The notes under the pieces: model-generated
Told to the model about the DNA's origin: nothing
The model's input: only the letters and a program-made list of their open reading frames with translations
The model's database searches: none
Assembly: GCF_018350175.1 (NCBI RefSeq)
Contig: NC_058376.1
Coordinates: 806,001 to 870,000 of the forward strand
Direction: 5' to 3'
From: Felis catus
Lineage: Eukaryota
Length of the DNA stretch: 64,000 nucleotides
Shown here: positions 16,800-60,015 of the stretch, piece after piece
How the letters are laid out: each line of letters opens with the position of its first letter
Numbering within the stretch: the stretch's first letter is position 1
Program-made: the position numbers and the translations under genes

Positions 16800-17030
16800 T
16801 TTCTTTTCTTCTTTTTTTAAAATTTAAATTCAAGTTAGTTAACATACAGTGTAGTTTTGGATTTGGGAGTAGAACGAAGTGATTCATCTCTTACATATGA
16901 CACCCAGTGCTCATCCTGAAAAGTGTCCTTCTTAATGCCCCTCACCCATTGAGCCCATCTTCCCACCCATCTCCCCTCCAGCAACCTTCTGTTCGTTCTC
17001 TGCAGTTAAGAGTCTCTTATGATTTGTCTC
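16800..17030 (-). mobile_element. Carnivore L1 3' end, left half of a split element
   Basis: T-rich tail at about 16800-16820, then CAAGTTAGTTAACATACAGTG...CACCCAGTGCTCATC...AGAGTCTCTTATGATTTGTCTC, stopping abruptly at the LTR at 17031. Confidence 0.85.
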
Positions 17031-17622
17031 TGAAACATGGTGCTGTCGAAAAAAACCACCAGACGCCGAATAGAAGCGAGGCAAGATTTTATTCACGGCC
17101 GGGCCAAACCTGATCTCCTGATCGTAAGGAGAAAAGTACAGAGAATGGCCCCGAACAAAGGTAGCAGTGAGCTTATATGGATTTTAGCAAGTCAGAATAC
17201 GTCATTATTTGGTTAACCAATTACAATCTACAGCCTTTCACGGTAGCCAGTTATATCGTGACACACAGACGTCAGTTTCGGTGGGAACCTATCAATTTAA
17301 AGTTCTTTGTCCTAAGAGGGTTTAAAATGACCAATCATAGTTAGACACCTAAGATGCCGTGGGGCAGCGAGTACGTGCCTTTTACATGTTGGTCTTGCCT
17401 AGGCCAGACCTTGGTAGAGGGGCTGGGGGAGCGTTTTGCATCCTAAGTGATCTATTCAGCAAGCAGGCGAGGTCCCAGAAGCAAGATAGGGAGGTTAGGA
17501 ACTTCCGATAACCCTAATAGGGAACTACAGAAGCCTTTTATCTCAATTATTCATGAAAGGTGACTTTAAGCCGAACTTATATACAATAAGCTTTCTGAGG
17601 TCTTATAAACTGACCTATTACA
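17031..17622 (-). mobile_element. ERV LTR (592 bp) at the outer end of palindrome arm A; no adjacent PBS or PPT
   Basis: Reverse complement of 31765-32356, with TG...CA termini. Flanked by L1 instead of viral internal sequence. Confidence 0.9.
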
Positions 17623-19739
17623 ACATCACCTCGGCCATCTGAGGACCCCAGGCTATGGAACCGTGGTCCGGAGAGATTGCGAGCAGAGCTGGTCGGAATG
17701 GGGTGCGGCAAAGCACAGAGGCAGGTTTCCAGAAAGCTCTCCAGGGTCCTCGGCATCCTGCCGCTTTTGAATCAAAGCCCTGATCTTTAAAATGCCAGCG
17801 ACGTCACAACGTGGGCCAGAAACACAAACATCTCTGGGCGTCCACCACCACCTGAAATATTGTCCATTTCTTGTAACTTGAGGTGGCTGGAAAGAATCAG
17901 GGGCGAGGGCTCCAAGAGGGTGGCTCCTGGCCCAGACTTTGTGTTTGGGGGGTAAACGCCATGCAGACAAACCTTGGCTGAGGAGGGGACAGGTATGGGG
18001 ACCCCGTTGCAGGCACTGCTGTCCCGGTGATGCCGCCTCAGGGCGCTCGAGTCCACCTGCCCCTGGGGGAGCACCTGCGACCCTCCGCTCTGCCTGAGGG
18101 CTCTGTCCTGCCCCACGGGCACCTCCTCTCCTGCCAGCCGGGGCCAGCCTGCCACCCGGGAGCGCGGATACCCCGACGGCCCTGGGGACAGAGCCGGTCC
18201 GGGTACGACACCGTCTCCCAGTTGGCCTGAGCGCCAGGCCGCCACGGTGCTCCCCCCTCCTCCTCCGGGCTCCCTGTACTCGTCATCCTGCGGGCTCCGT
18301 GGGCCCAAGTCTTCCTCTGATCAGGGACCACCCCGTGTCCAGTCTCCACACGCTGGGACTTGGGGCAGGTCGTCTGGACCTTCCGGACTCGTGCTTCCTT
18401 GCAGGGACATGTGCAGAGGCCTCCCTCCCAGACTCGCCAGAGGGGACCCAGCACAGGAAGATTCAGACGCCGTAAAGGAAGAGGCCACGTGGGGGACCCC
18501 GTCGGGTCGCGCTCACCGATGAGGTCCCGGTGTTCGGCACACGGCAGGGACCTGAGATGGCCGGCTGAATTAGGGAAGGAGGGAGGGAAGGTGGGAGTGA
18601 AACCACAGAAGCCGGGTCCACACACCAGGTCGGGTCAGAGGTCAGGTCAGAGGGCGTCACAGCTCGGGCCCTGGAAGGGGGCACGGGACACGTCCTTCTG
18701 TCCCTCCAGCGCTGACCTTCCTTCACGTGGGACCTGCTGACGTCCTGGATCGTCTCCACCTCCTCCGCAAACAACGCTGAGTGTTCCCGGAAGGGGGACG
18801 GCAGGCAGGGGCCGAGGAGGGGCTTCCGGAATCCTGTGCCCTGGGGGACTCTGGGACAGCCTTCCAGGTGGCCCCTTGTGTCCTCCAGGCACCAGGCCAC
18901 GATTCCACCTCATCTGTCGGGGAATGCGACAAGCCATCTAGAAGGCCCGTTTCGTCCCCGTGTCACAGATGGGGACACCGAGGCTAATAGCACAGCCTGG
19001 GTCACTAGTAAGACGAGCTAGGTCAGGAAGCCCATGTCCTTGACTTTGGATTGTCCTACCCGCAGGCCTGCGTCTTGGCGTCCTGGGGCTCGGGGTCCCT
19101 CTTCCTGGGGAACCCCACCACCCGCCGAAGGCCCGCCCCCCCTGAACTCAGGGGAGCAGAGCTGACCAACCTGCCTGGGGCCGGGCATGGGGACCGGGGA
19201 AGGGCCGACCCCAGGCTCTGTGGGCTCTCCCAGTCCTGGGCCAGCCGGTCCCCTGCAGGACGAGGACTTCTCGCTGGGGACCTGCTGGGGCCTCTGCTGC
19301 CTCACGTTGTCACCTGGGCTGCCGGTCCCCAGACCAGAAACCTGCCGGTCTGAAGGTGCCCAGCGCTGCCTCCCTCGGGTTTCACTTGCCCGAGTCCCTC
19401 CCCGGGACGCCCCGCATCTCTGACGCCGGCTCCCATGGACTGGGACGGGTCTGGTCTCCATCCCGGGGAACGCACGGGCTTTGGAGCGTTATTTGGCCCA
19501 GGGGCCTGTGAACCTTTCTGGCCCTGGGTCGTGAGGGATGCTCTCCCCTCTGCGGTGTGACCGTCCGGCCTTCTGCGTCTCCCGGCTTCTGTCTGGGCCA
19601 CGGGGGGACCAGCCGTGTCCTGGCTGGCGTCAGGCTGTGGTGTCACAGCACAAACGGGGGTCTCCACCCCGAGACCGTGCCCATTGTCACCGAAGGGGCC
19701 TCTTTTTTCCCACCTAATCTTTAATCCATTGTGATTTCA

Positions 19740-20070
19740 ACATCAAAGGAGAAACAGTCTATTTCAAGCGACCACAGAGTACGAAAATGAATCTGTCCCG
19801 TCTGAAAAGTCGGTGCAGACCCGAAGGTATCTCTTGAGAGATTCCACTTGTAGGAAACCTCCAGAGTAAGTAACGGAACACGGAGAGAAAGCGGACTGGG
19901 GGTTCCCAGGGCCTGGCGGGGGCACGAATGGGGAGGGCGGGCTCCGGGTACACGGTGTCCCTCGGGGACTGAGATACTCTGCACCAATATTCTGTGGCGT
20001 GGTTCACAGCGTCGTGAGTGTACCCAGCGCGCAGGAATTGCACAACGTAAAGTAAATAAAAATTTTACTG
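19740..20070 (+). mobile_element. Ancient L1M 3'-end relic inside the duplicated unit (copies near 29317-29647 and 58273-58603)
   Basis: GATTCCACTTGTAGGAAACCTCCAGAGTAAG...GGGGGTTCCCAGGGCCTGG...GGGTACACGGTGTCCCTCGGGGACTGAGA...GAATTGCACAACGTAAA follows the L1MB/MC 3' pattern with GC-shifted substitutions. Confidence 0.65.
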
Positions 20071-20269
20071 AGGATTAATATGGATTATAAACCAACAGTG
20101 AAGAAATAAAGTCACAGCTAAAAAGAAGAGGAGAGAAAGGATAAGGGAGAAGAGGAAGAGACATTGTGGTAGGGTGTCAGGGTCGGGGATTGGAACAATT
20201 AGAAATAAAACAAACATCCCGTGTAGGCCCTCAGGCCCTTGATCAGTGGCTGGCATCCATGTGGGAGCA

Positions 20270-20420
20270 AGGGCGGTGGCAGGGGCAGGGAGAAGGGCGG
20301 TGGCAGGGGCGGGGGCAGGGGCAGGGAGAAGAGAGGTGGCAGGGGCGGGGAGAAGGGCGGTGGCAGGAACGGTGTTGGGAGCAGAAGCAGGAACAGTGGA
20401 AGCAGCAGGAGCAGAAGCAG
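20270..20420 (+). repeat. Low-complexity GGGCGGTGGCAGGGGCAG / GCAGGAGCAGAA tandem repeat (copies near 28967-29117 and 58803-58953)
   Basis: Visible short imperfect tandem units. Confidence 0.75.
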
Positions 20421-21446
20421 GACCCAGCTGACTCTGCCCAGGTGCCCGCTGTCCCCGCACAGGTCCCAGGTCACCTGCCGGCTGCCGGGCCCCTGCAGGA
20501 GTCGCCCCAGACGCCACCCCCGCCTCCAGAGCCGCCGAGGCCCCCGAGGCTGTTGGGTCGGGCTCTGGAGCCGCACCGGCTTCTGCTCCTGCCCCGGACT
20601 CTTGAGAAGGAAACAGAGTGATGGTTGCAGCGGCTCCAAGGGCTCAGGGTGACAGGAGAGAAGGTCCCCCCGCGCCGGCCTCTCCAGGGGCCTTGCAGAC
20701 ACACAACACACCCCAGGGCCTCCCGAGAAGCCGCGGCCAGGAACCCACACCAGGACCTCTGGCCCCCTGCGGCCCGCAGCCCCGGGGGCTCTCAGTCTCT
20801 GCTCCTGGCCCCACACCAGCCCCCGGGGGCTCCTCCCTGGGTGGCCCAGCACCGCCCGGGGCCCCATGCACCCCATCCCCCACCCCCAGCCTTCTCACCC
20901 TCGGGCTCGGGCTCTGGGGGCTCCGGGTCCTGGTCCCAGGACCGCTGAGCCAGGACCCTGTGGAGGGGCCCGGGCGGTGAGGGAGGCCCTCCCAGGCCAT
21001 CTCCAGGCCCTGCTTCCGGAGACCTCCGTGCGGCCACTCTCTCCCCGGGTCCAGGGTGGCCCTCCTGGGCGACGGGGCACACGCACACCTCTGTAGGGCA
21101 GGTGAATCGGGATCCCGACAGTCGCCTCCCGATTTCATCCGTTGATTTCTGTAAAGACAGTGACCCGCGGCCGGCCCGGAGGCATCACAGCCCCGCCCGG
21201 CCATCCTCAGTGTCCTTCCGCCCTCTCCCCCTGCGGCTCCCAGATCCGACACAGACCTGAGTGCGCACAGCCCTGCGCCCGGGACACAGTGACATCCACC
21301 TGCAGGCTCGGGATGAATCTTGGGGACAAGAGGGCCACCCCAGCACACTCTGTCCCTCCCAGCCAGCCTTGACCTGGAGTGTGAGCATGGCCTGCCCACC
21401 AGGCATCTGACCCCTTCATCAGCCTGCACCTGCTCACGTGGGCCCT

Positions 21447-21448
<2 letters not shown>

Positions 21449-21480
<32 letters not shown>
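21449..21480 (+). repeat. (AC)16 microsatellite (copies at 27907-27938 and about 59982-60013)
   Basis: Direct count; same length in all three copies. Confidence 0.9.
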
Positions 21481-21482
<2 letters not shown>

Positions 21483-23337
21483 GAGGGGCCGTGGGGCCGC
21501 ACAAGTCAGATCAGAGCGGTGTCGGGCTGGACCGACTGTCTCTGGGGCTCCCTGGGTTACCTTTGGCTCCCTGCGAGCTAGAGACCTGAGGCGTCCTGTG
21601 CACGACCTGACCCACTGTCTCCGGGGTCGGGGAGCGTCGCAGCCACGGGCTCCCCTGAGCCAGCAGCCGCGGGACACGGGCACACAACAGGAGAACATGT
21701 TCGTCAGGCGAAGGTGTCCCAACGAATGAGCCCAGTCGGGCGCTGTCTCCACAATGTGGGTGCCTGGTGACCCGGGTTCTGACTTCACTTGGGCTTTGTG
21801 ACCAGAGAGGTGAGGTCACTGCCAGGTCACTGGGCTTTGTGACCAGAGAGGTGGGTCCCCTTACCCATCTTCCTCCTCCTACAAGAGCCCCTCCCAGGCT
21901 GCGGAGGGCTCCCCTCCACCCCATGCCCTGTCCCTACAGTGACACCAACACAGCCCAGCCACATCCCCGCGAGGCCTGGTGCAGCCGGTGTGGCAGCTCT
22001 GGGGACACAGAGCTGGGTTCAGACCTGGGTTTTCCTCCTGACCAGTGCCGGGACCCCGCACAGACCCTGTGCCTCCCGGGGCCCCCCGGTCTCCCCGTCT
22101 GCACAGTGGGGTCCTTCTGGAATCCACTTCTAGGGACACCATCAGGGAGACACCTGTAGACTCGTCCCGTGCCTGCTACCCCATGAGGCTCGTGGGCACA
22201 CGTGGCCGTGGAAAGATGAGGAAGGGGTGGGCCTGGCACGGAACACACTCACGCGGGCCTGGGTCTGCTCCGGGTCCAGGCACAGCCACCCCTCCTGCCT
22301 GGGTCCCGGGCCCGGGGGAAGGTGGAGGTGAGCTCGTTCAGACCCTGTGCCCACCCGACACGCCCCTCCAGGGGCTCCATCACATTTGGGCCCGGGTCCC
22401 AGCGCCTGGGCTGTGGCTCCCAGCCTTCCCGAATCCTGGTCACACATCCCTGTGTCACCCCCTCCCCTTCCGGGTGGACGGCCCGTGTGACCGCGTTCTA
22501 AGGGCTAGAAGACGATGACGGGCTGTCACTTCCAGGCCGATTCATGGAATTTCTGCTTTCCTCTCTCCGGGGTCCATTCTCTGTGTCTGCCTCGGACTCG
22601 GTCTGTCTCTGTGTGTCTCACAGGAGCAGGGCCTGTGGGCTCCAGGGTCCAGGTGACGACCCTCAGAAGCCTCCCTTGTGGCCCGTGTCCCTCCCCCGGC
22701 CCGGTGCTCAGCTCCCTCACGAGGCCTCCTCACCCCAGGCAGGGCACTGCCTGGGGAACCACTTCCTAATGAGGACCCGAGGCTCCAACAAGGAGGGTCT
22801 TCACCTCGGTCCCCACACCAGGGTCCACTGCTCGGCCACGTGCTGCAAACCCAGGACCTCGGTCCTCCAAGCCCCCAGGCTGCCCTCTGCTCAGAAGGAC
22901 CTTGAGGGAGTAGGAAGCATTTTCCCAGGAGGGGAGAACAGAGGGTCAGGGATGAAGATCCCGGGACACAGACTCGTCTATGAGCCTGTGGGACCCTGGG
23001 GACACTGTCTACGCAGCCCAATTTACGGAGGAGGACGCTGAGTCCTTCTGTGCCCTAGCCCCGTCCACACTTCCTACTTCCAGGTGCCCAGTGTGGTGGA
23101 CACAGGACCCCAGACCCCGTCCTCCCCTAGTTCCCGCCAATCCCCCCAGACATCTTGGGGACCCCCCGGCCCTCAGCCGGCACATCTCCCCTCCCCATGC
23201 TGTGGGTCCCGGGCTATTGCCAGGAATCCTGATGTCCCTGCCCATGGCCCCACTGCCTCCAGCCTTTCTCTTCTTTCCCCCACGTTACCCACCCCCTCCC
23301 AGTGTGGACTCCCCTCTGACCCCCAGCGGGGCAGTCC

Positions 23338-23340
<3 letters not shown>

Positions 23341-23374
<34 letters not shown>
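23341..23374 (+). repeat. (TG)17 microsatellite (mirror at 26013-26046; (TG)13 at 61874-61899)
   Basis: Direct count. Confidence 0.9.
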
Positions 23375-23375
<1 letters not shown>

Positions 23376-25657
23376 ACCCGCCTGTCTGGAGATGCCCAGT
23401 GGTCACAGCCTCACACAGACGGGGTGGATAGGGACCCCCGAGCATCTCAGGGGGTCTCGTTCCCAGGGAGAACCCCACGGGGGGATAGAGGCTGGCCTAG
23501 GACTGGAGACCAGCTCTGCTCCTCGGACGCCGCACACCTCACTTGTCCTGGGCCAGTCCTTGCCTCTCCTGACCTCAGTGTCCCCACTGTCCCTGAGGGT
23601 CAGACGGGGAAGTGCATCAGCGTGGCCTTGACCCAGGCTGTCCTCCAGGGGTAGGTGGAGGGGAGGTGCCCCGGCTACACAGGCCTCCCTCCCCAGGGCC
23701 GGCCAGGTCTGTGTCGTGGCCACGTGTGCAGACAGAAGGGGAATGAAATGGATGATGCAGAGTGATCACTACCACGGCAGGAACAAGGCGGGTACCGGTG
23801 ACTGATGGAGCACCCATACAGAGCCCGGATCGCAAACTCAGTGGGGAAGAGGAGAGGGGACACCAGTGAGGTACCCCCCCACAAAGCCATCCAGCGTTTC
23901 CATCCAGCCACCAGGGCTTGGCATGGCCCCAGGAGCAGTGGCCAACCAGACTCCTGACACAGGTCACTGTGGCCTCTTTCTCAGCAGTGGGGATCCAGGG
24001 GCCGGGAAACCCAGGGTGCAAGGGTGCTTGGGGCTACCTCCTCCCTTGGAGGAAAGAGAACAATAGAGATGTTCTCTGGGGACTCCCCAGGGCAGGAAAA
24101 ATGGGAGGAGCCCTCCCCCAGCCCAGACAACTCTTCCCCATGACTATTTCCCTGCTGGTGGTGGGAGGCGTTGAGGGAGTGTGGTACTGGCTTTAAACAG
24201 TGACTCTACACTTGAATGTTAGGTTCAAATTCTGCTTCTACTAGAACCTGAGCTTTGTGGCTTGGATCTTTCACTTGCCAGGCTGAGGGGATACACATGC
24301 TCTCAAGGACTCTCAAACGGAGATCTCTCGCAGGGTCCTGAACCTACTGGACCTGGGGAAGGGGTGGACCGGTCCCCTCCCTGGTCCTGATGGAGACCTT
24401 TCCTCCCAAAGACAGGTTCGTTCCTGGGCGTGATCCTGGGCCAGGGCTGGAGACAGCCCCTCACTCCCCAGGGGCTCTGGGGGCCGAGGGGGCTTGGATA
24501 CAAGCACAGCTCACTGCACCTCTCCCCCCAACCAGTGTGCACTGCCTGGGCAGGGACCCCCCGAGCCAAGGGCAAGCCTTCCCCTTCCGTCTGACCACAC
24601 ATTCTTCCCAGAGCTTGACGATGGCCTGTTCTTCTTGGCCATGGGGTATTGCTGGCCGACCAGGAGGGAGTCCAGCTGGTAGGGCAGGTGTAGCTACCGG
24701 ACACAGGGACACCTGTGAGCTACCGGGAGCCACATTCTGGTCTCTGTCCCCGGGCCTGCCCGGCAGCTGGGATCCAGGTGCCCTAGGGGTCAGCAGACAA
24801 CAGGGTCTGGGCTGAGCAGGAGGCCATGACCTCAAGGAGACTCCACTGGGCCCTCTCCTGGCTCCTGCCTAGTCTCACCTGTCCTCCCTGAGGGGCTCCA
24901 GGGCCCGGATCCAGGCCCCTTACGGCTGCTGGGGCTCCAGCCTGGAAAGATGTATAGCCTCTGGGGCAGCTGGACTTGTTGGGGCTGGAGGGAGGGCCGG
25001 CCACCGACAGGGCCTCGGCTGGGGAGGATGCGGGCCTCGTGGGGGTGAGGATGGGGCCGGGACCCGGTGCTGGGTCACGGCTCATGTATACAAAGGGCTG
25101 AAATCACTGAGTGCCCGGGGGGCGCCGAGTTAAAGTAGCCCCCTGACGCTTGGTCATCCTGGAGGTGGCCCCAGGCCTCCCCAGGCCGCTTCCCACCCTC
25201 TGACTCTGCCCAGGGCTGCAGCCAGGCCCAGGCTGGACCTCTGTCCAAGGTCCTGCCAGGAAGACAAGGCAGAAGGAGGAAAGGAGAAGGGGGAGGGGCG
25301 GACCGACTTCTCCCTGCCCTGAGTTGGCCTCCCTGCTGCCTGCAGGAGCCCTGGCCCAGCCATGCCCCAGGGTCCATGCACCTGGACCCTGGGGTAGAGT
25401 CTGCGGTCCAGGCCAGCTGGGTGGGGGTGGGTGTATTCACTGGCCTTCGTGTCCCCAGATGTCCAACCCACCTGGCCTTGCACCCTGAGGTGTGCCTGGC
25501 TGGGGCAGGCATGGTTCTGGGGCGCAGGAGAGGTTCGGGTCCCAGAGCCGTTGGTGGAGGCGGGAACATAGGGGACCAGCCAGGTGGGGAGCGATTGGAT
25601 TCATGCACGTCAGCGTTGCATCTGGATCATCTACAGGTGCTGAGTGCAGGTCCCTGG

Positions 25658-26011
25658 GCACACCTGGCCACGACACAGACCTGGCCGGCCCTGGGGAGGG
25701 AGGCCTGTGTAGCCGGGGCACCTCCCCTCCACCTACCCCTGGAGGACAGCCTGGGTCAAGGTCACGCTGATGCACTTCCCCGTCTGACCCTCAGGGACAG
25801 TGGGGACACTGAGGTCAGGAGAGGCAAGGACTGGCCCAGGACAAGTGAGGTGTGCGGCGTCCGAGGAGCAGAGCTGGTCTCCAGTCCTAGGCCAGCCTCT
25901 ATCCCCCCGTGGGGTTCTCCCTGGGAACGAGACCCCCTGAGATGCTCGGGGGTCCCTATCCACCCCGTCTGTGTGAGGCTGTGACCACTGGGCATCTCCA
26001 GACAGGCGGGT

Positions 26012-26049
<38 letters not shown>

Positions 26050-27904
26050 GGACTGCCCCGCTGGGGGTCAGAGGGGAGTCCACACTGGGAGGGGGTGGGT
26101 AACGTGGGGGAAAGAAGAGAAAGGCTGGAGGCAGTGGGGCCATGGGCAGGGACATCAGGATTCCTGGCAATAGCCCGGGACCCACAGCATGGGGAGGGGA
26201 GATGTGCCGGCTGAGGGCCGGGGGGTCCCCAAGATGTCTGGGGGGATTGGCGGGAACTAGGGGAGGACGGGGTCTGGGGTCCTGTGTCCACCACACTGGG
26301 CACCTGGAAGTAGGAAGTGTGGACGGGGCTAGGGCACAGAAGGACTCAGCGTCCTCCTCCGTAAATTGGGCTGCGTAGACAGTGTCCCCAGGGTCCCACA
26401 GGCTCATAGACGAGTCTGTGTCCCGGGATCTTCATCCCTGACCCTCTGTTCTCCCCTCCTGGGAAAATGCTTCCTACTCCCTCAAGGTCCTTCTGAGCAG
26501 AGGGCAGCCTGGGGGCTTGGAGGACCGAGGTCCTGGGTTTGCAGCACGTGGCCGAGCAGTGGACCCTGGTGTGGGGACCGAGGTGAAGACCCTCCTTGTT
26601 GGAGCCTCGGGTCCTCATTAGGAAGTGGTTCCCCAGGCAGTGCCCTGCCTGGGGTGAGGAGGCCTCGTGAGGGAGCTGAGCACCGGGCCGGGGGAGGGAC
26701 ACGGGCCACAAGGGAGGCTTCTGAGGGTCGTCACCTGGACCCTGGAGCCCACAGGCCCTGCTCCTGTGAGACACACAGAGACAGACCGAGTCCGAGGCAG
26801 ACACAGAGAATGGACCCCGGAGAGAGGAAAGCAGAAATTCCATGAATCGGCCTGGAAGTGACAGCCCGTCATCGTCTTCTAGCCCTTAGAACGCGGTCAC
26901 ACGGGCCGTCCACCCGGAAGGGGAGGGGGTGACACAGGGATGTGTGACCAGGATTCGGGAAGGCTGGGAGCCACAGCCCAGGCGCTGGGACCCGGGCCCA
27001 AATGTGATGGAGCCCCTGGAGGGGCGTGTCGGGTGGGCACAGGGTCTGAACGAGCTCACCTCCACCTTCCCCCGGGCCCGGGACCCAGGCAGGAGGGGTG
27101 GCTGTGCCTGGACCCGGAGCAGACCCAGGCCCGCGTGAGTGTGTTCCGTGCCAGGCCCACCCCTTCCTCATCTTTCCACGGCCACGTGTGCCCACGAGCC
27201 TCATGGGGTAGCAGGCACGGGACGAGTCTACAGGTGTCTCCCTGATGGTGTCCCTAGAAGTGGATTCCAGAAGGACCCCACTGTGCAGACGGGGAGACCG
27301 GGGGGCCCCGGGAGGCACAGGGTCTGTGCGGGGTCCCGGCACTGGTCAGGAGGAAAACCCAGGTCTGAACCCAGCTCTGTGTCCCCAGAGCTGCCACACC
27401 GGCTGCACCAGGCCTCGCGGGGATGTGGCTGGGCTGTGTTGGTGTCACTGTAGGGACAGGGCATGGGGTGGAGGGGAGCCCTCCGCAGCCTGGGAGGGGC
27501 TCTTGTAGGAGGAGGAAGATGGGTAAGGGGACCCACCTCTCTGGTCACAAAGCCCAGTGACCTGGCAGTGACCTCACCTCTCTGGTCACAAAGCCCAAGT
27601 GAAGTCAGAACCCGGGTCACCAGGCACCCACATTGTGGAGACAGCGCCCGACTGGGCTCATTCGTTGGGACACCTTCGCCTGACGAACATGTTCTCCTGT
27701 TGTGTGCCCGTGTCCCGCGGCTGCTGGCTCAGGGGAGCCCGTGGCTGCGACGCTCCCCGACCCCGGAGACAGTGGGTCAGGTCGTGCACAGGACGCCTCA
27801 GGTCTCTAGCTCGCAGGGAGCCAAAGGTAACCCAGGGAGCCCCAGAGACAGTCGGTCCAGCCCGACACCGCTCTGATCTGACTTGTGCGGCCCCACGGCC
27901 CCTC

Positions 27905-27940
<36 letters not shown>

Positions 27941-30900
27941 AGGGCCCACGTGAGCAGGTGCAGGCTGATGAAGGGGTCAGATGCCTGGTGGGCAGGCCAT
28001 GCTCACACTCCAGGTCAAGGCTGGCTGGGAGGGACAGAGTGTGCTGGGGTGGCCCTCTTGTCCCCAAGATTCATCCCGAGCCTGCAGGTGGATGTCACTG
28101 TGTCCCGGGCGCAGGGCTGTGCGCACTCAGGTCTGTGTCGGATCTGGGAGCCGCAGGGGGAGAGGGCGGAAGGACACTGAGGATGGCCGGGCGGGGCTGT
28201 GATGCCTCCGGGCCGGCCGCGGGTCACTGTCTTTACAGAAATCAACGGATGAAATCGGGAGGCGACTGTCGGGATCCCGATTCACCTGCCCTACAGAGGT
28301 GTGCGTGTGCCCCGTCGCCCAGGAGGGCCACCCTGGACCCGGGGAGAGAGTGGCCGCACGGAGGTCTCCGGAAGCAGGGCCTGGAGATGGCCTGGGAGGG
28401 CCTCCCTCACCGCCCGGGCCCCTCCACAGGGTCCTGGCTCAGCGGTCCTGGGACCAGGACCCGGAGCCCCCAGAGCCCGAGCCCGAGGGTGAGAAGGCTG
28501 GGGGTGGGGGATGGGGTGCATGGGGCCCCGGGCGGTGCTGGGCCACCCAGGGAGGAGCCCCCGGGGGCTGGTGTGGGGCCAGGAGCAGAGACTGAGAGCC
28601 CCCGGGGCTGCGGGCCGCAGGGGGCCAGAGGTCCTGGTGTGGGTTCCTGGCCGCGGCTTCTCGGGAGGCCCTGGGGTGTGTTGTGTGTCTGCAAGGCCCC
28701 TGGAGAGGCCGGCGCGGGGGTACCTTCTCTCCTGTCACCCTGAGCCCTTGGAGCCGCTGCAACCATCACTCTGTTTCCTTCTCAAGAGTCCGGGGCAGGA
28801 GCAGAAGCCGGTGCGGCTCCAGAGCCCGACCCAACAGCCTCGGGGGCCTCGGCGGCTCTGGAGGCGGGGGTGGCGTCTGGGGCGACTCCTGCAGGGGCCC
28901 GGCAGCCGGCAGGTGACCTGGGACCTGTGCGGGGACAGCGGGCACCTGGGCAGAGTCAGCTGGGTCCTGCTTCTGCTCCTGCTGCTTCCACTGTTCCTGC
29001 TTCTGCTCCCAACACCGTTCCTGCCACCGCCCTTCTCCCCGCCCCTGCCACCTCTCTTCTCCCTGCCCCTGCCCCCGCCCCTGCCACCGCCCTTCTCCCT
29101 GCCCCTGCCACCGCCCTTGCTCCCACATGGATGCCAGCCACTGATCAAGGGCCTGAGGGCCTACACGGGATGTTTGTTTTATTTCTAATTGTTCCAATCC
29201 CCGACCCTGACACCCTACCACAATGTCTCTTCCTCTTCTCCCTTATCCTTTCTCTCCTCTTCTTTTTAGCTGTGACTTTATTTCTTCACTGTTGGTTTAT
29301 AATCCATATTAATCCTCAGTAAAATTTTTATTTACTTTACGTTGTGCAATTCCTGCGCGCTGGGTACACTCACGACGCTGTGAACCACGCCACAGAATAT
29401 TGGTGCAGAGTATCTCAGTCCCCGAGGGACACCGTGTACCCGGAGCCCGCCCTCCCCATTCGTGCCCCCGCCAGGCCCTGGGAACCCCCAGTCCGCTTTC
29501 TCTCCGTGTTCCGTTACTTACTCTGGAGGTTTCCTACAAGTGGAATCTCTCAAGAGATACCTTCGGGTCTGCACCGACTTTTCAGACGGGACAGATTCAT
29601 TTTCGTACTCTGTGGTCGCTTGAAATAGACTGTTTCTCCTTTGATGTTGAAATCACAATGGATTAAAGATTAGGTGGGAAAAAAGAGGCCCCTTCGGTGA
29701 CAATGGGCACGGTCTCGGGGTGGAGACCCCCGTTTGTGCTGTGACACCACAGCCTGACGCCAGCCAGGACACGGCTGGTCCCCCCGTGGCCCAGACAGAA
29801 GCCGGGAGACGCAGAAGGCCGGACGGTCACACCGCAGAGGGGAGAGCATCCCTCACGACCCAGGGCCAGAAAGGTTCACAGGCCCCTGGGCCAAATAACG
29901 CTCCAAAGCCCGTGCGTTCCCCGGGATGGAGACCAGACCCGTCCCAGTCCATGGGAGCCGGCGTCAGAGATGCGGGGCGTCCCGGGGAGGGACTCGGGCA
30001 AGTGAAACCCGAGGGAGGCAGCGCTGGGCACCTTCAGACCGGCAGGTTTCTGGTCTGGGGACCGGCAGCCCAGGTGACAACGTGAGGCAGCAGAGGCCCC
30101 AGCAGGTCCCCAGCGAGAAGTCCTCGTCCTGCAGGGGACCGGCTGGCCCAGGACTGGGAGAGCCCACAGAGCCTGGGGTCGGCCCTTCCCCGGTCCCCAT
30201 GCCCGGCCCCAGGCAGGTTGGTCAGCTCTGCTCCCCTGAGTTCAGGGGGGGCGGGCCTTCGGCGGGTGGTGGGGTTCCCCAGGAAGAGGGACCCCGAGCC
30301 CCAGGACGCCAAGACGCAGGCCTGCGGGTAGGACAATCCAAAGTCAAGGACATGGGCTTCCTGACCTAGCTCGTCTTACTAGTGACCCAGGCTGTGCTAT
30401 TAGCCTCGGTGTCCCCATCTGTGACACGGGGACGAAACGGGCCTTCTAGATGGCTTGTCGCATTCCCCGACAGATGAGGTGGAATCGTGGCCTGGTGCCT
30501 GGAGGACACAAGGGGCCACCTGGAAGGCTGTCCCAGAGTCCCCCAGGGCACAGGATTCCGGAAGCCCCTCCTCGGCCCCTGCCTGCCGTCCCCCTTCCGG
30601 GAACACTCAGCGTTGTTTGCGGAGGAGGTGGAGACGATCCAGGACGTCAGCAGGTCCCACGTGAAGGAAGGTCAGCGCTGGAGGGACAGAAGGACGTGTC
30701 CCGTGCCCCCTTCCAGGGCCCGAGCTGTGACGCCCTCTGACCTGACCTCTGACCCGACCTGGTGTGTGGACCCGGCTTCTGTGGTTTCACTCCCACCTTC
30801 CCTCCCTCCTTCCCTAATTCAGCCGGCCATCTCAGGTCCCTGCCGTGTGCCGAACACCGGGACCTCATCGGTGAGCGCGACCCGACGGGGTCCCCCACGT

Positions 30901-32356
30901 GGCCTCTTCCTTTACGGCGTCTGAATCTTCCTGTGCTGGGTCCCCTCTGGCGAGTCTGGGAGGGAGGCCTCTGCACATGTCCCTGCAAGGAAGCACGAGT
31001 CCGGAAGGTCCAGACGACCTGCCCCAAGTCCCAGCGTGTGGAGACTGGACACGGGGTGGTCCCTGATCAGAGGAAGACTTGGGCCCACGGAGCCCGCAGG
31101 ATGACGAGTACAGGGAGCCCGGAGGAGGAGGGGGGAGCACCGTGGCGGCCTGGCGCTCAGGCCAACTGGGAGACGGTGTCGTACCCGGACCGGCTCTGTC
31201 CCCAGGGCCGTCGGGGTATCCGCGCTCCCGGGTGGCAGGCTGGCCCCGGCTGGCAGGAGAGGAGGTGCCCGTGGGGCAGGACAGAGCCCTCAGGCAGAGC
31301 GGAGGGTCGCAGGTGCTCCCCCAGGGGCAGGTGGACTCGAGCGCCCTGAGGCGGCATCACCGGGACAGCAGTGCCTGCAACGGGGTCCCCATACCTGTCC
31401 CCTCCTCAGCCAAGGTTTGTCTGCATGGCGTTTACCCCCCAAACACAAAGTCTGGGCCAGGAGCCACCCTCTTGGAGCCCTCGCCCCTGATTCTTTCCAG
31501 CCACCTCAAGTTACAAGAAATGGACAATATTTCAGGTGGTGGTGGACGCCCAGAGATGTTTGTGTTTCTGGCCCACGTTGTGACGTCGCTGGCATTTTAA
31601 AGATCAGGGCTTTGATTCAAAAGCGGCAGGATGCCGAGGACCCTGGAGAGCTTTCTGGAAACCTGCCTCTGTGCTTTGCCGCACCCCATTCCGACCAGCT
31701 CTGCTCGCAATCTCTCCGGACCACGGTTCCATAGCCTGGGGTCCTCAGATGGCCGAGGTGATGTTGTAATAGGTCAGTTTATAAGACCTCAGAAAGCTTA
31801 TTGTATATAAGTTCGGCTTAAAGTCACCTTTCATGAATAATTGAGATAAAAGGCTTCTGTAGTTCCCTATTAGGGTTATCGGAAGTTCCTAACCTCCCTA
31901 TCTTGCTTCTGGGACCTCGCCTGCTTGCTGAATAGATCACTTAGGATGCAAAACGCTCCCCCAGCCCCTCTACCAAGGTCTGGCCTAGGCAAGACCAACA
32001 TGTAAAAGGCACGTACTCGCTGCCCCACGGCATCTTAGGTGTCTAACTATGATTGGTCATTTTAAACCCTCTTAGGACAAAGAACTTTAAATTGATAGGT
32101 TCCCACCGAAACTGACGTCTGTGTGTCACGATATAACTGGCTACCGTGAAAGGCTGTAGATTGTAATTGGTTAACCAAATAATGACGTATTCTGACTTGC
32201 TAAAATCCATATAAGCTCACTGCTACCTTTGTTCGGGGCCATTCTCTGTACTTTTCTCCTTACGATCAGGAGATCAGGTTTGGCCCGGCCGTGAATAAAA
32301 TCTTGCCTCGCTTCTATTTGGCGTCTGGTGGTTTTTTTCGACAGCACTCTGTTTCA
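25658..32356 (-). repeat. Palindrome arm B (6.7 kb)
   Basis: Reverse complement of 17031-23729; the spacer is 23730-25657. Confidence 0.97.
31765..32356 (+). mobile_element. 5' LTR of a gammaretrovirus-like ERV
   Basis: Starts TGTAATAGG and ends GTTTCA. ATTGG (CCAAT) motifs, TATAA at 32210-32214, AATAAA at 32294-32299; directly followed by a PBS. Confidence 0.9.
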
Positions 32357-32358
32357 TT

Positions 32359-32376
32359 TGGAGGTCCCACCGAGAT
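32359..32376 (+). other. Primer-binding site, tRNA-Gln
   Basis: TGGAGGTCCCACCGAGAT, 2 nt after the LTR CA end; matches the known Gln-type PBS of endogenous gammaretroviruses. Confidence 0.9.
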
Positions 32377-32761
32377 TCTGTGACCACCCGAAATTCAGAG
32401 GCTGAAGCGGAACAGCTAAGGGAGAGCTCCCGAGGGACGTTCCTGGGCCCCGCTTTCCGTTCTCAGACCTGGCTTAAGTAAGGTACGTGAGGCGGTGCCT
32501 ATTTTCTATTTTCAGTTTTCTGTTTTCTGTTTTCTGTTACTGGTTGGATCTGACTCTAGGAGGGAAGGCTGGATGCGGGTTAACTTCCCCCTAGCTGGTG
32601 TCTGGTGGAGATGTCCCCAGCACCGCCTGGGTCTCCGGACCGTCTGGGTTGGGTTGATCACCCCAACCGTTTGTTCTATGTTCAGTGCTCTGTGTGCCCT
32701 GTTAAACATTTCCTGTTAACCTATCATTATCTCTGGTGTGACCCACTGTTTAGCCTCTGTC

Positions 32762-34256
32762 ATCGGTCAGTCTTTGTCCAAGCCTTGCTCCCCCCTTAAA
32801 TGCACGCTAAATAACTTCTCTGGTTTCAGAAAAAGAAGAAAGAACTATGGCTTTAACTTAAAGCCATCCTGGCTGCGGACATATTGCCAACTGGACTGGC
32901 CGACATTCTCTGGGGTTGACTGGCCCCCAGAGGGCTCCTATAATCTTAACCTTGCTTATGCCGTCCGCAGGATTTGTCATGATGTCCATCCTGACCGGGA
33001 GCCATATGCTGTGACTTGGGTCGACCTCCTAGAAGACCCACCTTCCTGGCTGAGAGAGTGCCAGAAATGGCCAAAAGCCATCATCTGGGATTTCCCTTTC
33101 CCACTCCCCTTCCTGCTCTCCTCCAAACTCCAAACCCTTGCTTCCTGTCACTCAGCCTTCAAAGAGGCTTTACCCAGTGCTTCAGGAGATACATGAAGGT
33201 GGGGACTTGTTATCTGATCCTCAGGGACCACCTCCTTATCTGCAGAGCTAGCTATCCCCACTAGCTCCCCAGGAACCAAAAGCCGAAGGAGATCCTTTGA
33301 CTACTCCCCCACATACCAGATCAGGAGCCCTCTATAGAGGAGAACACCAGTCCTCTGATGCCCCAGTTCCCATCCTTCCTCTTAGGCAAACGGCTCCGGC
33401 TCCTAGTCCAGACGGGCAGCCAACACGCCCGATGCTGGTCTACACTCCTTTCTCCACCACGGACCTCTACAACTGGAAAACTCAGAACCTGCCTTTCTCT
33501 GAAAACCCCCAGGGCCTAATTGACTTATTGAGCTCTATTTTCACCACCCACTTACCCTCTTGGGAAGATTGTCACCAACTCTTGCAGGTCTCACTGACTT
33601 CCGAGGAAAGGGCCCGAGTGCTCCGGGAAGCCACGAGAGCAGTCCTTGGCCCAGATGGAATGCCTACCACAGACCTTCACGGAATTGAGCACGTTTTTCC
33701 TTCCGCGCCGCCCCAGTGGGGCCCGAACACGGATAACGGTAGGGAGCATCCACCCCAGTATCGCCAGATTCTGTTACAGGGGTTCCGCGCAGCAGCACAA
33801 AAGCCCACCGATCTGACAAAAATTCATGACACGGTCCAAGGACCGAATGAGTCACCTGCAGCCTTCCTAGAAAGGCTTTACCAGGCTTTCCGCTTATATT
33901 CTCCTATTGATCCTGAGGCAGCAGAGAACCGAAAAACCATTAATACGGATTTCGATTCTCAGTCGGCCCCAGACATCCGTAAAAACTCCAAAAATTAGAA
34001 GGATTCGAAGGAAAGGTGATTTCAGAGTTGGTAGAAATAGCCCAGCGAGTTTTTCAGAGCCAGGACAGCCCTGCCATTGTGCAAGGGAAGGAAATAGGGA
34101 AGGTCCTCGTAGCAGCCGGGGGAAAACCACCGGGCAACAGCAAAGGACAGGGGAGGCCTCAACCCCGCCAGAAAGGACCCCGAGCAACGAGCAACGTTGG
34201 GAAAAAATCAATGTGCTTATTGCAAAAAAGAAGGACGTTGGAAAGATAAATGCCCC
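32762..34256 (+). pseudogene. gag: ERV gag (MA-CA-NC), defective
   Basis: Start codon appears as ATC (IGQSLSKP for MGQSLSKP). MA motif LDWPTFSGVDWPPEGS, CA motif YTPFSTTDLYNWKTQN, NC knuckle CAYCKKEGRWKDKC (H to R). Frameshifts between segments. Confidence 0.9.
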
Positions 34257-36430
34257 AAGGGTTTAAAAACTCCCCTACTCTTTTTGATGAGGCTCTTCGA
34301 AGGGATTTGGTCCCCTACCGGGAGAGCCACCCAGATGTTACGCTGTTACAACATGTAGATGACTTGCTCCTAGCTGCCGACTCCTTAGAGAGCTGCACAA
34401 AGGCTACGGAGGACCTGCTAAGGGAATTAGATGTCCTGGGATATAAAGTTTCTGCAAAAAAGGCGCAAATTTGCTTGGACTCTGTAATATACTTGGGCTA
34501 CCAACTGCATGAAGGCAAGCGATCGCTGGGGCCGGAAAGAATCCAAGCTATCCTCAACATTCCTAAACCCACAACTAAAGGCAGATCAGGGAGTTCCTAG
34601 GGGCCGCCGGGTATTGCTGTCTCTGGATACCCAGTTGCGCTGAAATGGCGAAACCCCTGTACTCTGCCGCTGGGGGTGAAGGAACCGAGATGGTCCGGGG
34701 AGAACAAGAAGATAGGGCTTTGGAGCAGATCAAGAGCGCCCTCAGCCAAGCCCCGGCCCCAGCCTTACCTGCTATTACCAAACCCTTCCAACTATTTGAG
34801 CATGAGATCCGGGGAATTGCGAAAGGGGTCCTAACTCACACTTGGACTAACCAACGCTTGGACAAGACCTTCAGATCACAGGACCTCACCCAGTAGCATC
34901 ACTGCTGCGCTCCCCGCCAGACCGATGGATCTCTAATGTGCGAATCATCCAGGATCAGGTATTGCGTCTAGACCCTCCACGCATCACTTTCCTGAAGACA
35001 GAGGCTTTGAATCCAGCCACGTTGCTGCCTGATAGGGACTCAGAGGCCCCACTCCACGATTGCTTGGAAACCGTGAGTACTCTTACGGGACTGAGGGGGG
35101 ACTTAAGAGATCAACCTCTGTCAAAGGTGGACTTCGAGCTGTTCACTGATGGCAGCAGTCTTGTCGAAGATGGAATCGGATGTGCAGGTGCAGCTGTAGT
35201 GACTCAGGACCAGGTTCTCTGGGCCCAAGTCCTGGAGCACGACACTTCTGCCCAAAGAGCAGAGCTGATAGCCCTAGCCCAGGCCCTCAGATGGGCAAAG
35301 GGAAAAACGGTGAACATTTTCACGGGTAGCAGGTACGCCTTCGCCACCGCCCAGGTTCATGGAGCTCTATATAAGGAAAGAGGACTGTTAACATCAGGAG
35401 GGAAGGAAATTAAAAATAAAAAAGAAATCCTGGCCCTACTGGAAGCCTGATGGCTTCCTAAAAAGGTGGCTATTATACATCGCAAGAGCCACCAAAAGGC
35501 AGACTCGCCCCAAGCAGAAGGAAACGCCTCTGCTGACGCAACAGCAAAGGCCACAGCAGAAAGAGATGTTCTTCCGATTAAGATTTTGCCTCTGCTGCCC
35601 CCACGCTTTCTCCCCACGGGACCGTCTTATACCAAAGAAGAGCTACGCCTGATGAAAACCTAGAGGGCAAAAAGAGATGACCAGCATTGGTATCGCCTCG
35701 AGGATGGACGCATCTTCATGCCAGGAGCTATAGGAGGGACCTGGTGCCCGCAAGTCCACAGCCCTACACATCTAGGGGCAACCTAGTTGTCTGAACTAGC
35801 CCAAAGGGACTATTTTATCCCAAACCTTAATAAAACCGTAAAAAGCCTAGTAGACCGATGCAAAGCCTGTGCTCAGACTAACCCATCTCCCAAGTTTAAT
35901 TTTTCAGGGCAGAGACGACGCGGACAGATGCCTGGAGAAATATGGGAACTTGACTTCACTGAGATGAAACAGGGACTCTATGGCTATCATTATCTCCTCG
36001 TTCTAGTGGACACCTTCTCTGGATGGGTAGAGGCTTTACCCACGACAACAGAGTCAGCTCAGAGAGTAGCTAAGAAATTACTCAGTGAATTGGTTCCCCG
36101 GAGTGGCATCCCTATTGGTCTGGGGTCAGATAATGGCCCAGATATCTAAAATGTTGGCCAAAAGCTTACAAATAAATTGGAAATTACGTTGTGCCTACCA
36201 CCCCCGAAGTTCAGGGCAGGTAGAAAGAACGAATAGAACTCTAAAAGAAACCTTGACTGAATTAATTCCAGAAACTTGCGAAAACTGGGTAGGCCTCCTT
36301 CCTGTTGCCCTCCTCAGAGGGCGCTGTATACCTTACGTAAGAAGGGCATCCCCCCCCCCTTGAAATCCTATTTGGAAGACCACCTCCCTTGCTTCCAAAA
36401 CTGGGAGATGAACAATGGGCGGAAATCTCA
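34251..36430 (+). pseudogene. pol: ERV pol (partial RT, RNase H, integrase), defective; protease and N-terminal RT deleted
   Basis: PQGFKNSPTLFDEAL; LQHVDDLLLA (YVDD to HVDD); RNase H FTDGSS and TSAQRAELIAL; integrase WELDFTE and GSDNGP. Several stops and frameshifts. Confidence 0.92.
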
Positions 36431-37050
36431 AACCAACACCTAGGTTTTGTTCCCCAGTCTCGATTTACGAGGGAACCCATTTCTATCATCCTAGTGCCCC
36501 TCTTTGTAGGACCGGGGGTTGCAGGATCCATTGGCGTAAGTACTGCCGCTCTCATCACAGGGGATCAGAACTTCAAATTACTAAGCAAACACATTGATCA
36601 GGATATATCAGAATTAGAAAGGAATATCGATAAACTGTCTGAATCCATAAACTCTTTAGCCGAGGTGGTACTTCAGAATCGGAGGGGCTTAGACCTGTTA
36701 TTGTTACCACAAGGAGGGCTTTGGATGGCCCTTGGGGGACAATGCTGTTTTTATGTCAATAATTCAAGAATCGTCAAGCAGAGCTTGAGTCAGGTCAGAC
36801 AACGACTAGAGGAAAGAGAAAGGCAAAGATGAATTAGTCAAAATTGGTATGAGTCTATATTCTCCTGGTTGCCTTGGCTAACGACTCTCCTAAGTGCCCT
36901 TGTGGGACCCCTTATCTTTCTCTTTCTAGCTATGACTATAGGTCCCTGTTGATAAAACTACTACTCCAGTTCATAAATACAAAAATAGGATCTATGAAGC
37001 TTATGGTGTTACGTAGCCCATACGTCCCACTGGCCCAAATGCCAGATTAA
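36430..37050 (+). pseudogene. env: ERV env, TM region only (SU deleted)
   Basis: RFTR/EPIS cleavage site, immunosuppressive domain LQNRRGLDLLL, WMALGGQCC (degenerate CX6CC), TGA at 36830-36832, then membrane anchor [16 protein letters not shown] and terminal TAA at 37048-37050. Confidence 0.9.
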
Positions 37051-37077
37051 GGCGATTCAAAGGTTTGAATAACTGGC

Positions 37078-59979: not shown

Positions 59980-60015
<36 letters not shown>

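Follow-up and report, generated by a model that had tools for sequence, protein, structure and literature searches.

Fold-back and FoSTeS/MMBIR-type template switching, and the DUP-TRP/INV-DUP structures of human genomic disorders, are known kinds of rearrangement, and a segmental duplication is, by the standard definition, a sequence present in copies that are at least 1 kb long and at least 90% identical. ERV-mediated rearrangements, in work that Hughes and Coffin are said to have published in Nat Genet in 2001, were reportedly recognised by non-matching target-site duplications. The large palindromes of mammalian X and Y chromosomes were delimited by arms of >8 kb with >99% arm identity, one 6.5-kb orthologue having been admitted despite the 8-kb cut-off; their arms carry protein-coding, often testis-expressed, gene families, and deletions of the spacer and of the inner arms have been reported (Jackson et al. 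2021, PMC8327919). Moreover, the divergence between the arms of X/Y palindromes is far below that between genomes, which has been read as gene conversion (PMC8327919; bioRxiv 10.1101/800185, Swanepoel et al.; PMC8600007; PMC8981503).

The palindrome described here lies in a window (the whole stretch of Felis catus DNA that was analysed) of 64,000 nucleotides. It resembles the X/Y palindromes in that inverted arms with >99% identity (99.91%) enclose a unique spacer, the arms are closer to each other than the genomes are, and structural change is found at the centre of symmetry, here as a 1.2-kb inner loss in one arm. It differs from them in its arms, which at 6.7 kb now, and presumably ~7.8 kb before the inner deletion, fall below the 8-kb cut-off (PMC8327919), in the lack of a detected protein-coding or testis gene family (Pfam, 20 ORFs from arm and spacer), and in an outer boundary that is set by a retroviral LTR. 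With ERV-mediated rearrangements it has in common a complete LTR with unlike flanking 4-mers in a family that makes 4-bp duplications (AACT/AACT in Neofelis), and probable LTR-level recombination, which would put breakpoints exactly on element ends; unlike in those rearrangements and in solo LTRs, the presumed recombinant LTR is here the outer end of a palindrome arm, and its partner LTR still sits on a provirus without its own 3' LTR. Like FoSTeS/MMBIR duplications, it has an inverted copy near its source, a short spacer and putative short G-rich junction microhomology, whereas, in contrast to the disorder structures, the locus is germline, fixed or at least shared, small in scale and overlaid with later secondary changes, and, unlike DUP-TRP/INV-DUP, it has no triplication; the evidence for microhomology is weak. 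The palindrome is inherited and lies in GC-rich, apparently gene-free felid DNA. As its history we favour, with a probability of roughly 55%, an inverted duplication made by template switching, LTR-LTR recombination later affecting one of the arms and gene conversion keeping them alike.

Anatomy of the palindrome and its third copy

Repeat search, base-by-base comparison and self-BLAST agreed on a single inverted pair with gap-free arms of 6699 bp each, whose paired coordinates sum to 49387 (Table 1), exactly as had been claimed in the original prediction; its 1928-bp spacer (23730–25657) was likewise recovered by all three methods. Beyond the arms, complementarity fell to chance level on either side in the base-by-base comparison, and the window sequence contains no N. 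The arms are 99.91% identical, with no indel and with six mismatches, at positions 17038, 17039, 17068, 20666, 23625 and 23723 of the left arm (the partner of each being 49387 minus its position); the total is one higher than that listed by the original prediction. Two microsatellites, (CA)n near 21447 and (GT)n at 23340–23374, have equal lengths in both arms, as had been noted beforehand, because there is no arm indel; both vary in length in the third copy and in the contigs of other samples. Being inverted copies of this length and identity, the palindrome is a genuine but fairly ordinary inverted segmental duplication.

Pfam domains were absent from 20 ORFs taken from the arm and the spacer, 30 long ORFs outside the provirus gave no Pfam match within the window, and neither Rfam families nor tRNAs were found within the window. 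The idea that the arms, or other parts of the window, contain a gene was therefore rejected, the Pfam, Rfam and tRNA searches being empty outside the provirus. The arms are apparently gene-free as far as such a search reaches, short exons and expression lying outside its range.

Table 1 Coordinates of the palindrome, the flanking elements and the third copy within the window
Feature	Position	Strand	Description
5'-truncated L1-like 3' end	16822..17030	-	short A-rich tail; flanks left LTR
Left arm	17031..23729	-	solo LTR and 6.1 kb of host DNA, GC-rich and non-coding (segments N, A, g, B)
Left LTR, solo	17031..17622	-	592 bp; U5 end (CA) adjoins L1-like repeat, U3 start adjoins host DNA
14-nt remnant of distal S2	23730..23743	+	reverse complement of 24579-24592 with 1 mismatch; also matches 63321-63334 (third copy)
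M2	23744..23872	+	follows S2 in third copy (63472-63601, 90.8% identical); same orientation relative to left arm
Y, unique spacer DNA	23873..24536	+	no other match within window
S2	24537..25657	+	colinear with right arm exactly as in third copy; now counted as spacer
Right arm	25658..32356	+	mirror of left arm; 6 mismatches, no indel
Right LTR, 5' LTR of provirus	31765..32356	+	U3-side flank ATGT, same as left LTR
Proviral interior, old gammaretrovirus-like	32357..37097	+	TT, PBS, MA, p30, RNase H, integrase, env TM; large internal gaps
Start of host segment K	37098..37125	+	joined to provirus at junction J2 (37097/37098)
Third copy, segment A	55599..56739	+	99.1% identity with 30233-31375; opposite orientation to segment B of the same copy
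Third copy, B, S2, m98 and M2	57824..63601	-	B 57824-62254 (~99.5%), S2 62255-63373 (97.1%), m98 and M2 63374-63601

The palindrome is part of a near-identical duplication cluster, the third copy of which, at 55.6–63.4 kb, is devoid of the LTR and of the 388 bp adjoining it. Segments B and S2 are unbroken in the right arm and in the third copy; in the left arm, B is followed by the 14-nt remnant of distal S2 and then by M2 (which we take to be half of a MIR element), and in the third copy M2 lies 137 bp beyond the 14-mer. On the other side of the spacer, Y meets S2 at junction J1, near 24536/24537. Because the third copy runs through from B to S2, the current boundary between arm and spacer is secondary: judged by this comparison, S2 once belonged to the arm and the inner arm boundary is a later deletion breakpoint, the left arm having lost ~1.2 kb and retained the 14-nt remnant. 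The original arms would accordingly have measured at least 7.8 kb (~7.8–12.6 kb) and the original spacer ~0.9 kb.

LTR edges and proposed history

The limits of the LTR were taken from both LTRs of a related clouded-leopard (Neofelis) provirus, which carries a 4-bp target-site duplication, AACT, on each side; so delimited, the LTR is 592 bp long, begins TGTAATAGG and finishes CTGTTTCA. With these limits, the homology between the arms ends exactly at the LTR CA, and the two arms continue as the original prediction had it, the right one into TT, PBS and gag (the last by Pfam) and the left one into an L1-like repeat. The left junction has the processed CA end but no TT, whereas in the right arm TT comes directly after CA. 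The repeat, which we take to be an L1 3' end, the name resting on our reading of the sequence, has copies at 9103–9309 and 51013–51140 and one in the Neofelis locus, and the neighbouring ORF2-like and L1 pieces gave no Pfam match. The pieces at 16822–17030 and 63602–64000 were considered as the halves of one L1 and rejected, since they overlap by ~40 bp in L1 coordinates.

The left LTR is a complete LTR without internal sequence, situated between L1-like and host DNA as a solo LTR would be; in place of an identical target-site duplication on both sides, it is flanked in ERV orientation by ATGT (U3 side) and GAGA (U5 side). These unlike flanks suggest that different elements recombined, or that flanks were exchanged in some other way. 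An LTR start at 31557, for which the GAGA before its TG would match the L1-side flank, was rejected because the Neofelis comparison gives 31765 and hence unlike flanks, and a single provirus with L1|LTR as its 3' junction was rejected because the same LTR limits leave the flanks non-matching. Divergence between the arms is highest in the outermost 38 bp of the LTR: relative to both Neofelis LTRs, there are two derived changes in the right tip and one in the left, as expected if the tips go back to different LTRs. In the Neofelis provirus itself, the 5' LTR differs from the 3' LTR by 3.55% overall and at 7 of the last 80 bp. Error-prone synthesis near the breakpoints was rejected as the full cause of the edge mismatches, since both tips carry derived changes and 23723 lies on the deletion junction.

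On the right, the CA of the LTR is directly followed by TT and an 18-nt PBS (32359–32376), presumably for tRNA-Gln, and then by the Pfam domains Gag_MA, Gag_p30, RNase_H, rve and TLV_coat, in this order on the + strand and with large gaps between them. The TG...CA LTR, the PBS and the gamma-type gag, pol and env domains make the provirus gammaretrovirus-like, and its closest named relative is the Neofelis locus; a pair of LTRs with a matching 4-bp target-site duplication is lacking. The provirus is old, internally deleted and defective. Its 3' LTR is absent, and no third LTR copy occurs anywhere within the window; the interior ends with a polypurine tract (37079–37093) and TGTA (37094–37097), the first 4 nt of the LTR, after which host DNA begins. 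The start of this host segment, K, has GGGCAGG in common with the start of S2, and CAGGAG and a G run in common with the polypurine tract. The presence of GGGCAGG at both J1 and J2 is only suggestive of a 7-nt microhomology at the insertion junctions, a 7-nt word being shared, at any position, by ~5% of random host 25-mer pairs. The similarity between the polypurine tract and the K start might weakly explain why the copy ends just 4 nt into the LTR.

In the history that we favour, the order of events and the direction of copying are inferred as follows. An old gammaretrovirus-like provirus would have stood beside host segment H, and a fold-back-type template switch during replication or repair would have copied ~12.6 kb in inverted orientation (S2, H, the 5' LTR, the interior of the provirus and the first 4 nt of another LTR after it) and inserted the block ~0.9 kb away, between Y and K. 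In the source arm, homologous recombination of the 5' LTR with another LTR of the same orientation may then have removed the proviral interior and left the solo LTR; because the flanking 4-mers are unlike, the partner was probably an LTR of a second element inside the L1, itself a presumed element, rather than the provirus's own 3' LTR. Such LTR-LTR recombination in one arm would explain why the arm homology ends exactly at the LTR CA, why one arm leads to L1 and the other to PBS and gag, and why divergence peaks in the outermost 38 bp of the LTR. Two deletions next to the spacer, one of ~1065 bp and one of 137 bp, would have shortened the source arm and made S2 appear as spacer, and arm-to-arm gene conversion throughout would have kept the interiors near-identical, with the extreme edges escaping it. 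Most simply, then, arms ending exactly at LTR termini are a by-product of LTR-LTR recombination, and a new mechanism is unnecessary.

The same edges may also be read with copying in the opposite direction. The right arm and the provirus would then be in situ, a broken end in a separate solo LTR within the L1 would have invaded the inverted 5' LTR, and break-induced replication would have proceeded leftwards through the LTR, H and S2 and then switched back; the provirus would have lost its 3' LTR separately, by a deletion at a 4-nt (TGTA) microhomology. This course accounts for the exact U5 edge, the unlike flanks (GAGA vs ATGT) and the diverged LTR tip, and TGTA at 37094–37097 may alternatively be what is left of an ATGT duplication, followed by the first base of K. 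We nevertheless regard it as doubtful, since on the right it requires a separate loss of exactly one LTR length, it leaves as coincidences both GGGCAGG at the S2 and K starts and the resemblance of K to the polypurine tract, and no trace of the remaining L1 half or of the second element is found within the window.

Arm identity and probable gene conversion

The arm interiors differ at 2 of 6654 positions (0.03%). For comparison, the window differs from contigs of other samples by 0.40% in the unique left flank (L011) and by ~0.74% in the unique part of the spacer (L003, a contig of a k-mer short-read metagenome assembly from a different sample). The divergence between arms is thus below that between genomes (0.03% vs 0.40–0.74%), as judged with a single junction-spanning contig from one of these samples. 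Moreover, five of the six mismatches are found no more than 105 bp from an arm end (P ~2e-7 under uniformity), and this clustering makes an evenly ageing young duplicate unlikely. Conversion also fits the microsatellites, which are equally long in the two arms but vary among other copies and samples. The original prediction had offered very recent formation and ongoing arm-to-arm conversion side by side; the low divergence of the interiors and the edge-clustered mismatches speak against the former and favour the latter, so that the arms are most likely kept alike by gene conversion.

A very young duplication, in which the arms would be alike for lack of time and without any conversion, is consistent with the 99.91% identity, the absence of indels and the equal microsatellite lengths. 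It appears rather improbable, because the derived inner junctions are also present in a sample whose unique DNA is 0.4–0.7% different, because the structure already bears subsequent changes (one arm has lost the proviral interior, and two inner deletions have occurred), and because the mismatches are situated at the arm edges and not evenly spread.

The alleles at 20762, 21867 and 22080 were taken up as derived and common to both arms relative to the third copy and the sample contigs; they were downgraded, the copies of segment B being 0.2–0.4% apart. Sample contigs inside segment B look like mosaics of the three near-identical copies, so that alleles in this segment are not safely assignable to one arm, and the argument for conversion therefore rests on the junction-bearing unique parts.

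Junctions in other samples and meaning of the locus

In the contig L003, the right arm is followed by S2, J1, Y, M2, the 14-nt remnant and, finally, 59 bp of the left arm; its junctions are identical to those in the window. The junction between host DNA and LTR is carried by four further contigs (L002, L008, L009 and L010), and L011 carries the left flank up to the L1, ending 107 bp before the L1|LTR junction. Exact look-ups of the outer junctions (17030/17031 and 37097/37098) gave no match, nor did two metagenome scans with outer-junction 24-mers; a homologue search with the ORF spanning J2 gave no support for that outer junction, and in one with an ORF from K the sole match was the protein of the window itself. 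A search for a unique-flank contig of the same sample, for comparing depth by SPAdes coverage, found none.

A fold-back assembly artefact is unlikely, because L003 crosses the whole spacer and both inner junctions. Thus, the fold-back chimera against which the original prediction had been set was not seen at the inner junctions; L003 covers no outer junction. Long near-identical inverted repeats beside a near-identical third copy are hard to assemble, and the outer junctions are without an independent match, as would be the case if only one arm were real and the other came from a chimeric fold-back read or from wrongly joined haplotigs or paralogues. We consider such an artefact, in any of these forms, very improbable, since a different sample enters the left arm through the same 14-nt remnant junction, the arms have distinct, biologically sensible flanks and six real differences, and the structure requires four distinct junctions and not one fold-back point.

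Finally, it is scarcely credible that the inverted duplication was started by retroviral machinery or by strand discontinuities in a provirus that had just integrated, either as a copy made from tRNA-primed cDNA of a read-through transcript or through a break at a plus-strand discontinuity with integrase joining the CA end, which if true would mean a host palindrome created directly by a retrovirus: both odd boundaries do lie 0–4 nt from ends defined by reverse transcriptase (U5|PBS; polypurine tract|U3), and the left junction is a processed CA end without the TT seen in the right arm, but the provirus is an old, defective one, the landing of a cDNA 0.9 kb from the template it was copied from would be unexpected, the CA edge is obtained more simply from LTR-LTR recombination, and a matching 4-bp duplication around the structure is absent.

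Read according to the favoured history of template switch, LTR-LTR recombination and conversion, the locus would be a compact and readable case of how a mammalian palindrome is built and then remodelled, in which inverted duplication, loss of the proviral interior in one arm, erosion of the centre and homogenisation of the remainder are visible as stages. For annotation, it warns that the boundaries between palindrome arm and spacer may differ from the original ones, and that a single history can underlie both a one-LTR provirus and a solo LTR located 15 kb from it. Since the arms yielded no gene, a direct phenotypic consequence is not expected. From the analogy of known palindromes (PMC8327919), it is reasonable to suppose that the spacer may flip and that the locus may be at risk of rearrangement; the main effects would be local structural instability, that is, spacer inversion and central deletions.

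Arms, LTRs, and the adjoining provirus

Self-comparison of the window revealed an inverted repeat whose arms pair without a gap, partner coordinates always summing to 49387 (see the table), and thus the arm length, spacer length, and coordinate sum of the original prediction were all confirmed. A base-by-base comparison of the arms gave six mismatches (17038, 17039, 17068, 20666, 23625, and 23723), which include the sites noticed before and exceed their predicted count by one. Past both ends, arm complementarity falls to chance level, and the window contains no N, so that no masked sequence lies within the palindrome. Both arms and the third copy of the arm sequence described below also carry a short tandem repeat rich in G, with periods of 24 and 36 bp (20263-20367, 29020-29124, and 58796-58900), which could form a G-quadruplex.

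Palindrome features in the window
Feature	Position	Strand or orientation	Length	Basis
Left arm	17031-23729		6699 bp	Self-comparison
Right arm	25658-32356	Inverted relative to left arm	6699 bp	Self-comparison
Spacer between arms			1928 bp	
Left LTR	17031-17622	-	592 bp	Limits from Neofelis provirus (L001)
Right LTR	31765-32356	+	592 bp	Limits from Neofelis provirus (L001)

On the 3' side of the right arm, Pfam matches to Gag_MA, Gag_p30, RNase H, integrase, and the TM part of the TLV_coat envelope follow in this order on the plus strand, and the provirus is therefore gammaretrovirus-like and, given domain spacings too small for complete pol and env, internally deleted. Its best named p30 relative is an uncharacterised clouded leopard locus (91% identity), which places the host among the felids. 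This Neofelis locus (L001) holds a provirus of the same family, paralogous to that of the window and ~89% identical; both of its LTRs begin TGTAATAGG and terminate CTGTTTCA, with AACT on either side as a 4-bp target duplication. The limits of the window LTRs were transferred from these two LTRs, and therefore the arm homology stops exactly at the terminal CA, bearing out a predicted edge with PBS-gag on one side and an L1-like repeat on the other. Beyond CA, the right arm continues with TT and an 18-nt primer-binding site, presumably of the tRNA-Gln type, and the left arm with a 5'-truncated L1-like repeat, which we take to be an L1 3' end and which recurs elsewhere in the window as well as in L001. 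A Pfam search of the L1-like pieces gave no match, and no third LTR copy occurs within the whole 64-kb window.

The proviral interior closes with a polypurine tract (37079-37093) followed by TGTA (37094-37097), the first four LTR bases, and then by GC-rich, unrelated host DNA (segment K). In ERV orientation, the left LTR is bordered by ATGT on the U3 side, common to both arms, and by GAGA on the U5 side; given the 4-bp duplication of the family, the L1/LTR and host/LTR junctions are not partners from one integration. The window provirus (32357-37097) has a 5' LTR only, and its internal deletions differ from those of L001, 34214-35974 being without counterpart in L001 and L001:11684-13243 without counterpart in the window.

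Inner boundary and independent contigs

The self-comparison also revealed a third copy of the arm sequence at 55599-63601, in which the duplicon segments A and B are 99.1% identical to 30233-31375 and ~99.5% identical to 25658-30096, respectively. Its homology runs beyond the arm boundary into 1.1 kb of the spacer (S2, 24537-25657; 97%), and 98 bp beyond S2 lies a 130-bp segment (M2) with a 90.8% match to spacer 23744-23872. The right arm is colinear with S2, like the third copy, and the left arm runs from B through 14 nt (23730-23743) to M2. Read in reverse complement, these 14 nt match 24579-24592 at all but one position (17/21 with context), and the third copy has the same 14-mer between B and M2, separated from them by 1066 bp and 137 bp, respectively. 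In the simplest reading of this order, the left arm would formerly have run through S2 before two losses, of ~1065 bp and 137 bp, with the resulting deletion junction at the 23723 mismatch. In the original palindrome, arms at least 7.8 kb long would then have flanked a spacer of ~0.93 kb, with the novel fold-back junction (J1) at ~24536/24537, where S2 meets the unique spacer part (Y). This would agree with primate X palindromes, in which erosion at the symmetry centre has also been described (PMC8327919).

Within the third copy, segment A (55599-56739) lies in the opposite orientation to segment B (within 57824-63601), an unrelated 1084-bp stretch (56740-57823) replaces the 136 bp of the arms (30097-30232), and the LTR and the adjoining 388 bp are absent. 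Two L1-like fragments, at 17030 adjoining the left LTR and at 63602 adjoining the third-copy M2, are cut at nearly the same site of the L1 3' region and overlap by ~40 bp in L1 coordinates (relative to the copy at 9103-9609). Since the L1 at 63602 has no 3' end, its edge against M2 points to a rearrangement breakpoint and not to an insertion.

Contigs built from cat-family host reads in ENA metagenome assemblies were reached through one arm ORF in a protein collection. One of 6356 bp (L003), from a k-mer assembly of a different sample, aligns to 30003 down to 23671 and covers B of the right arm, S2, J1, Y, M2, the 14-nt remnant, and 59 bp of the left arm, with both inner junctions identical to the window. 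The palindrome centre is therefore independently confirmed, and the fold-back chimera that the original prediction had considered is unlikely. The outer junctions (17030/31 and 37097/98) lack such confirmation, having had no match in further look-ups and two metagenome scans. Contig L002 extends from within the LTR through the arm's host DNA (H) to S2, the host/LTR junction is present in L008, L009, and L010, and L011, from the same sample as L003, covers the left flank up to L1, ending 107 bp short of the LTR.

In L009, positions 1-95 correspond to window 30564-30658 and 85-1989 to 30100-32006, and upstream of 30100 a 92%-identical piece of segment A takes the place of segment B, which could be an alternative duplicon order or a misjoin. 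In L003, the 59 bp at the inner end of the left arm (23671-23729) differ from the right-arm end of the same contig at three positions (23692, 23708, and 23723), which fits edge divergence, contig-end errors being possible.

Probable gene conversion and age of the palindrome

Very recent formation and arm-to-arm gene conversion had been predicted as alternatives, and the divergence pattern favours the latter. Because the same derived junctions occur in both, the palindrome predates the divergence of the window and sample genomes, which differ in unique DNA by 0.40% in the left flank (21 substitutions/5188 bp, L011) and by ~0.74% in the unique spacer part (6 substitutions/807 bp, L003). A young duplicate without conversion does not fit, as the arm interiors (17069-23722) differ at 2 of 6654 positions and five of the six mismatches lie at most 105 bp from an arm end (P about 2e-7). 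This pattern fits arm-to-arm gene conversion, ongoing or recent. Neither microsatellite varies in length between the two arms, and both have other lengths in the third copy and other samples.

In segment B, paralogous and orthologous copies all lie within 0.2-0.4% and short-read contigs resemble mosaics; therefore, allele sharing there was not used as support. Patchy identity suggests exchange between paralogues, with chimeric assembly as the alternative. S2 and the third copy (62255-63373) show zero differences over 24609-25063 and clusters of differences at 24547-24608, 25064-25071, and 25509-25652; L003 carries third-copy alleles at 13 sites within 25523-25652, and a further cluster, at 25269-25351, is peculiar to L002, either paralogue gene conversion or chimeric short-read assembly accounting for these patterns. 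A paralogous contig (L004, ENA ERZ27274756; ~88% identical to the arms over window 19708-23519) contains an 800-bp block 100% identical to 22269-23068, which resembles a tract of recent conversion, in either direction, with a diverged fourth copy.

Proposed history and role

A model of template switching and LTR-LTR recombination covers most of the facts. The source on the left would have comprised the L1-side LTR, the proviral interior, the 5' LTR, H, and S2, then M2, Y, and K. A template switch would have copied S2 through the interior and 4 nt of the next LTR, inverted, between Y and K; homologous recombination between the left-arm LTRs would then have removed the proviral interior, and the inner deletions would have come afterwards. 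Because this recombination leaves LTRs facing L1 and PBS-gag, respectively, homology must stop at CA; in the model, the right side lacks a 3' LTR because it was never copied, and TGTA follows the polypurine tract because the copy ends 4 nt into the next LTR. Against both Neofelis LTRs, the right arm has the derived state at two of the three LTR-tip differences and the left arm at one, which an origin of the tips from different LTRs would predict; between the Neofelis LTRs themselves, 7 of the last 80 bp differ (3.55% overall). The non-matching flanks would be explained if the recombination partner were the LTR of another element in L1. Both S2 and K carry GGGCAGG at their start, and the beginning of K is similar to the polypurine tract, lending weak support to a template-switch junction; a 7-nt match is, however, not uncommon in such GC-rich DNA, occurring in about 5% of random pairs when its position is free.

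The main rival takes the right arm as the in-situ copy and the left as one made by break-induced copying from an anchor in a solo LTR. It explains the left edge equally well but requires that a piece of exactly LTR size was lost separately on the right. Copying may have run in either direction, and the LTR-terminus edge of the arms has an ordinary explanation.

A G-rich minisatellite at 3818-4357 has nested periods of 23, 115, and 184 bp, such repeats being typical of recombination-prone GC-rich DNA. A family of ~200-bp repeats (42989-43175, 43899-44058, 44847-45070, 46257-46475, and 51815-52034), 70-83% identical mutually and to three places in L001, presumably represents carnivore SINEs.

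In the arms, the CpG observed/expected ratio ranges over about 0.3-0.7. Searches of the arms and of the rest of the window outside the provirus found no gene, RNA family, or tRNA, and the palindrome is therefore treated as a structural feature with no known cellular role. Its action would be mechanical, the arms pairing and converting each other; in analogy to other palindromes, they may also invert the centre or delete around it, and one centre deletion has already happened in this palindrome.
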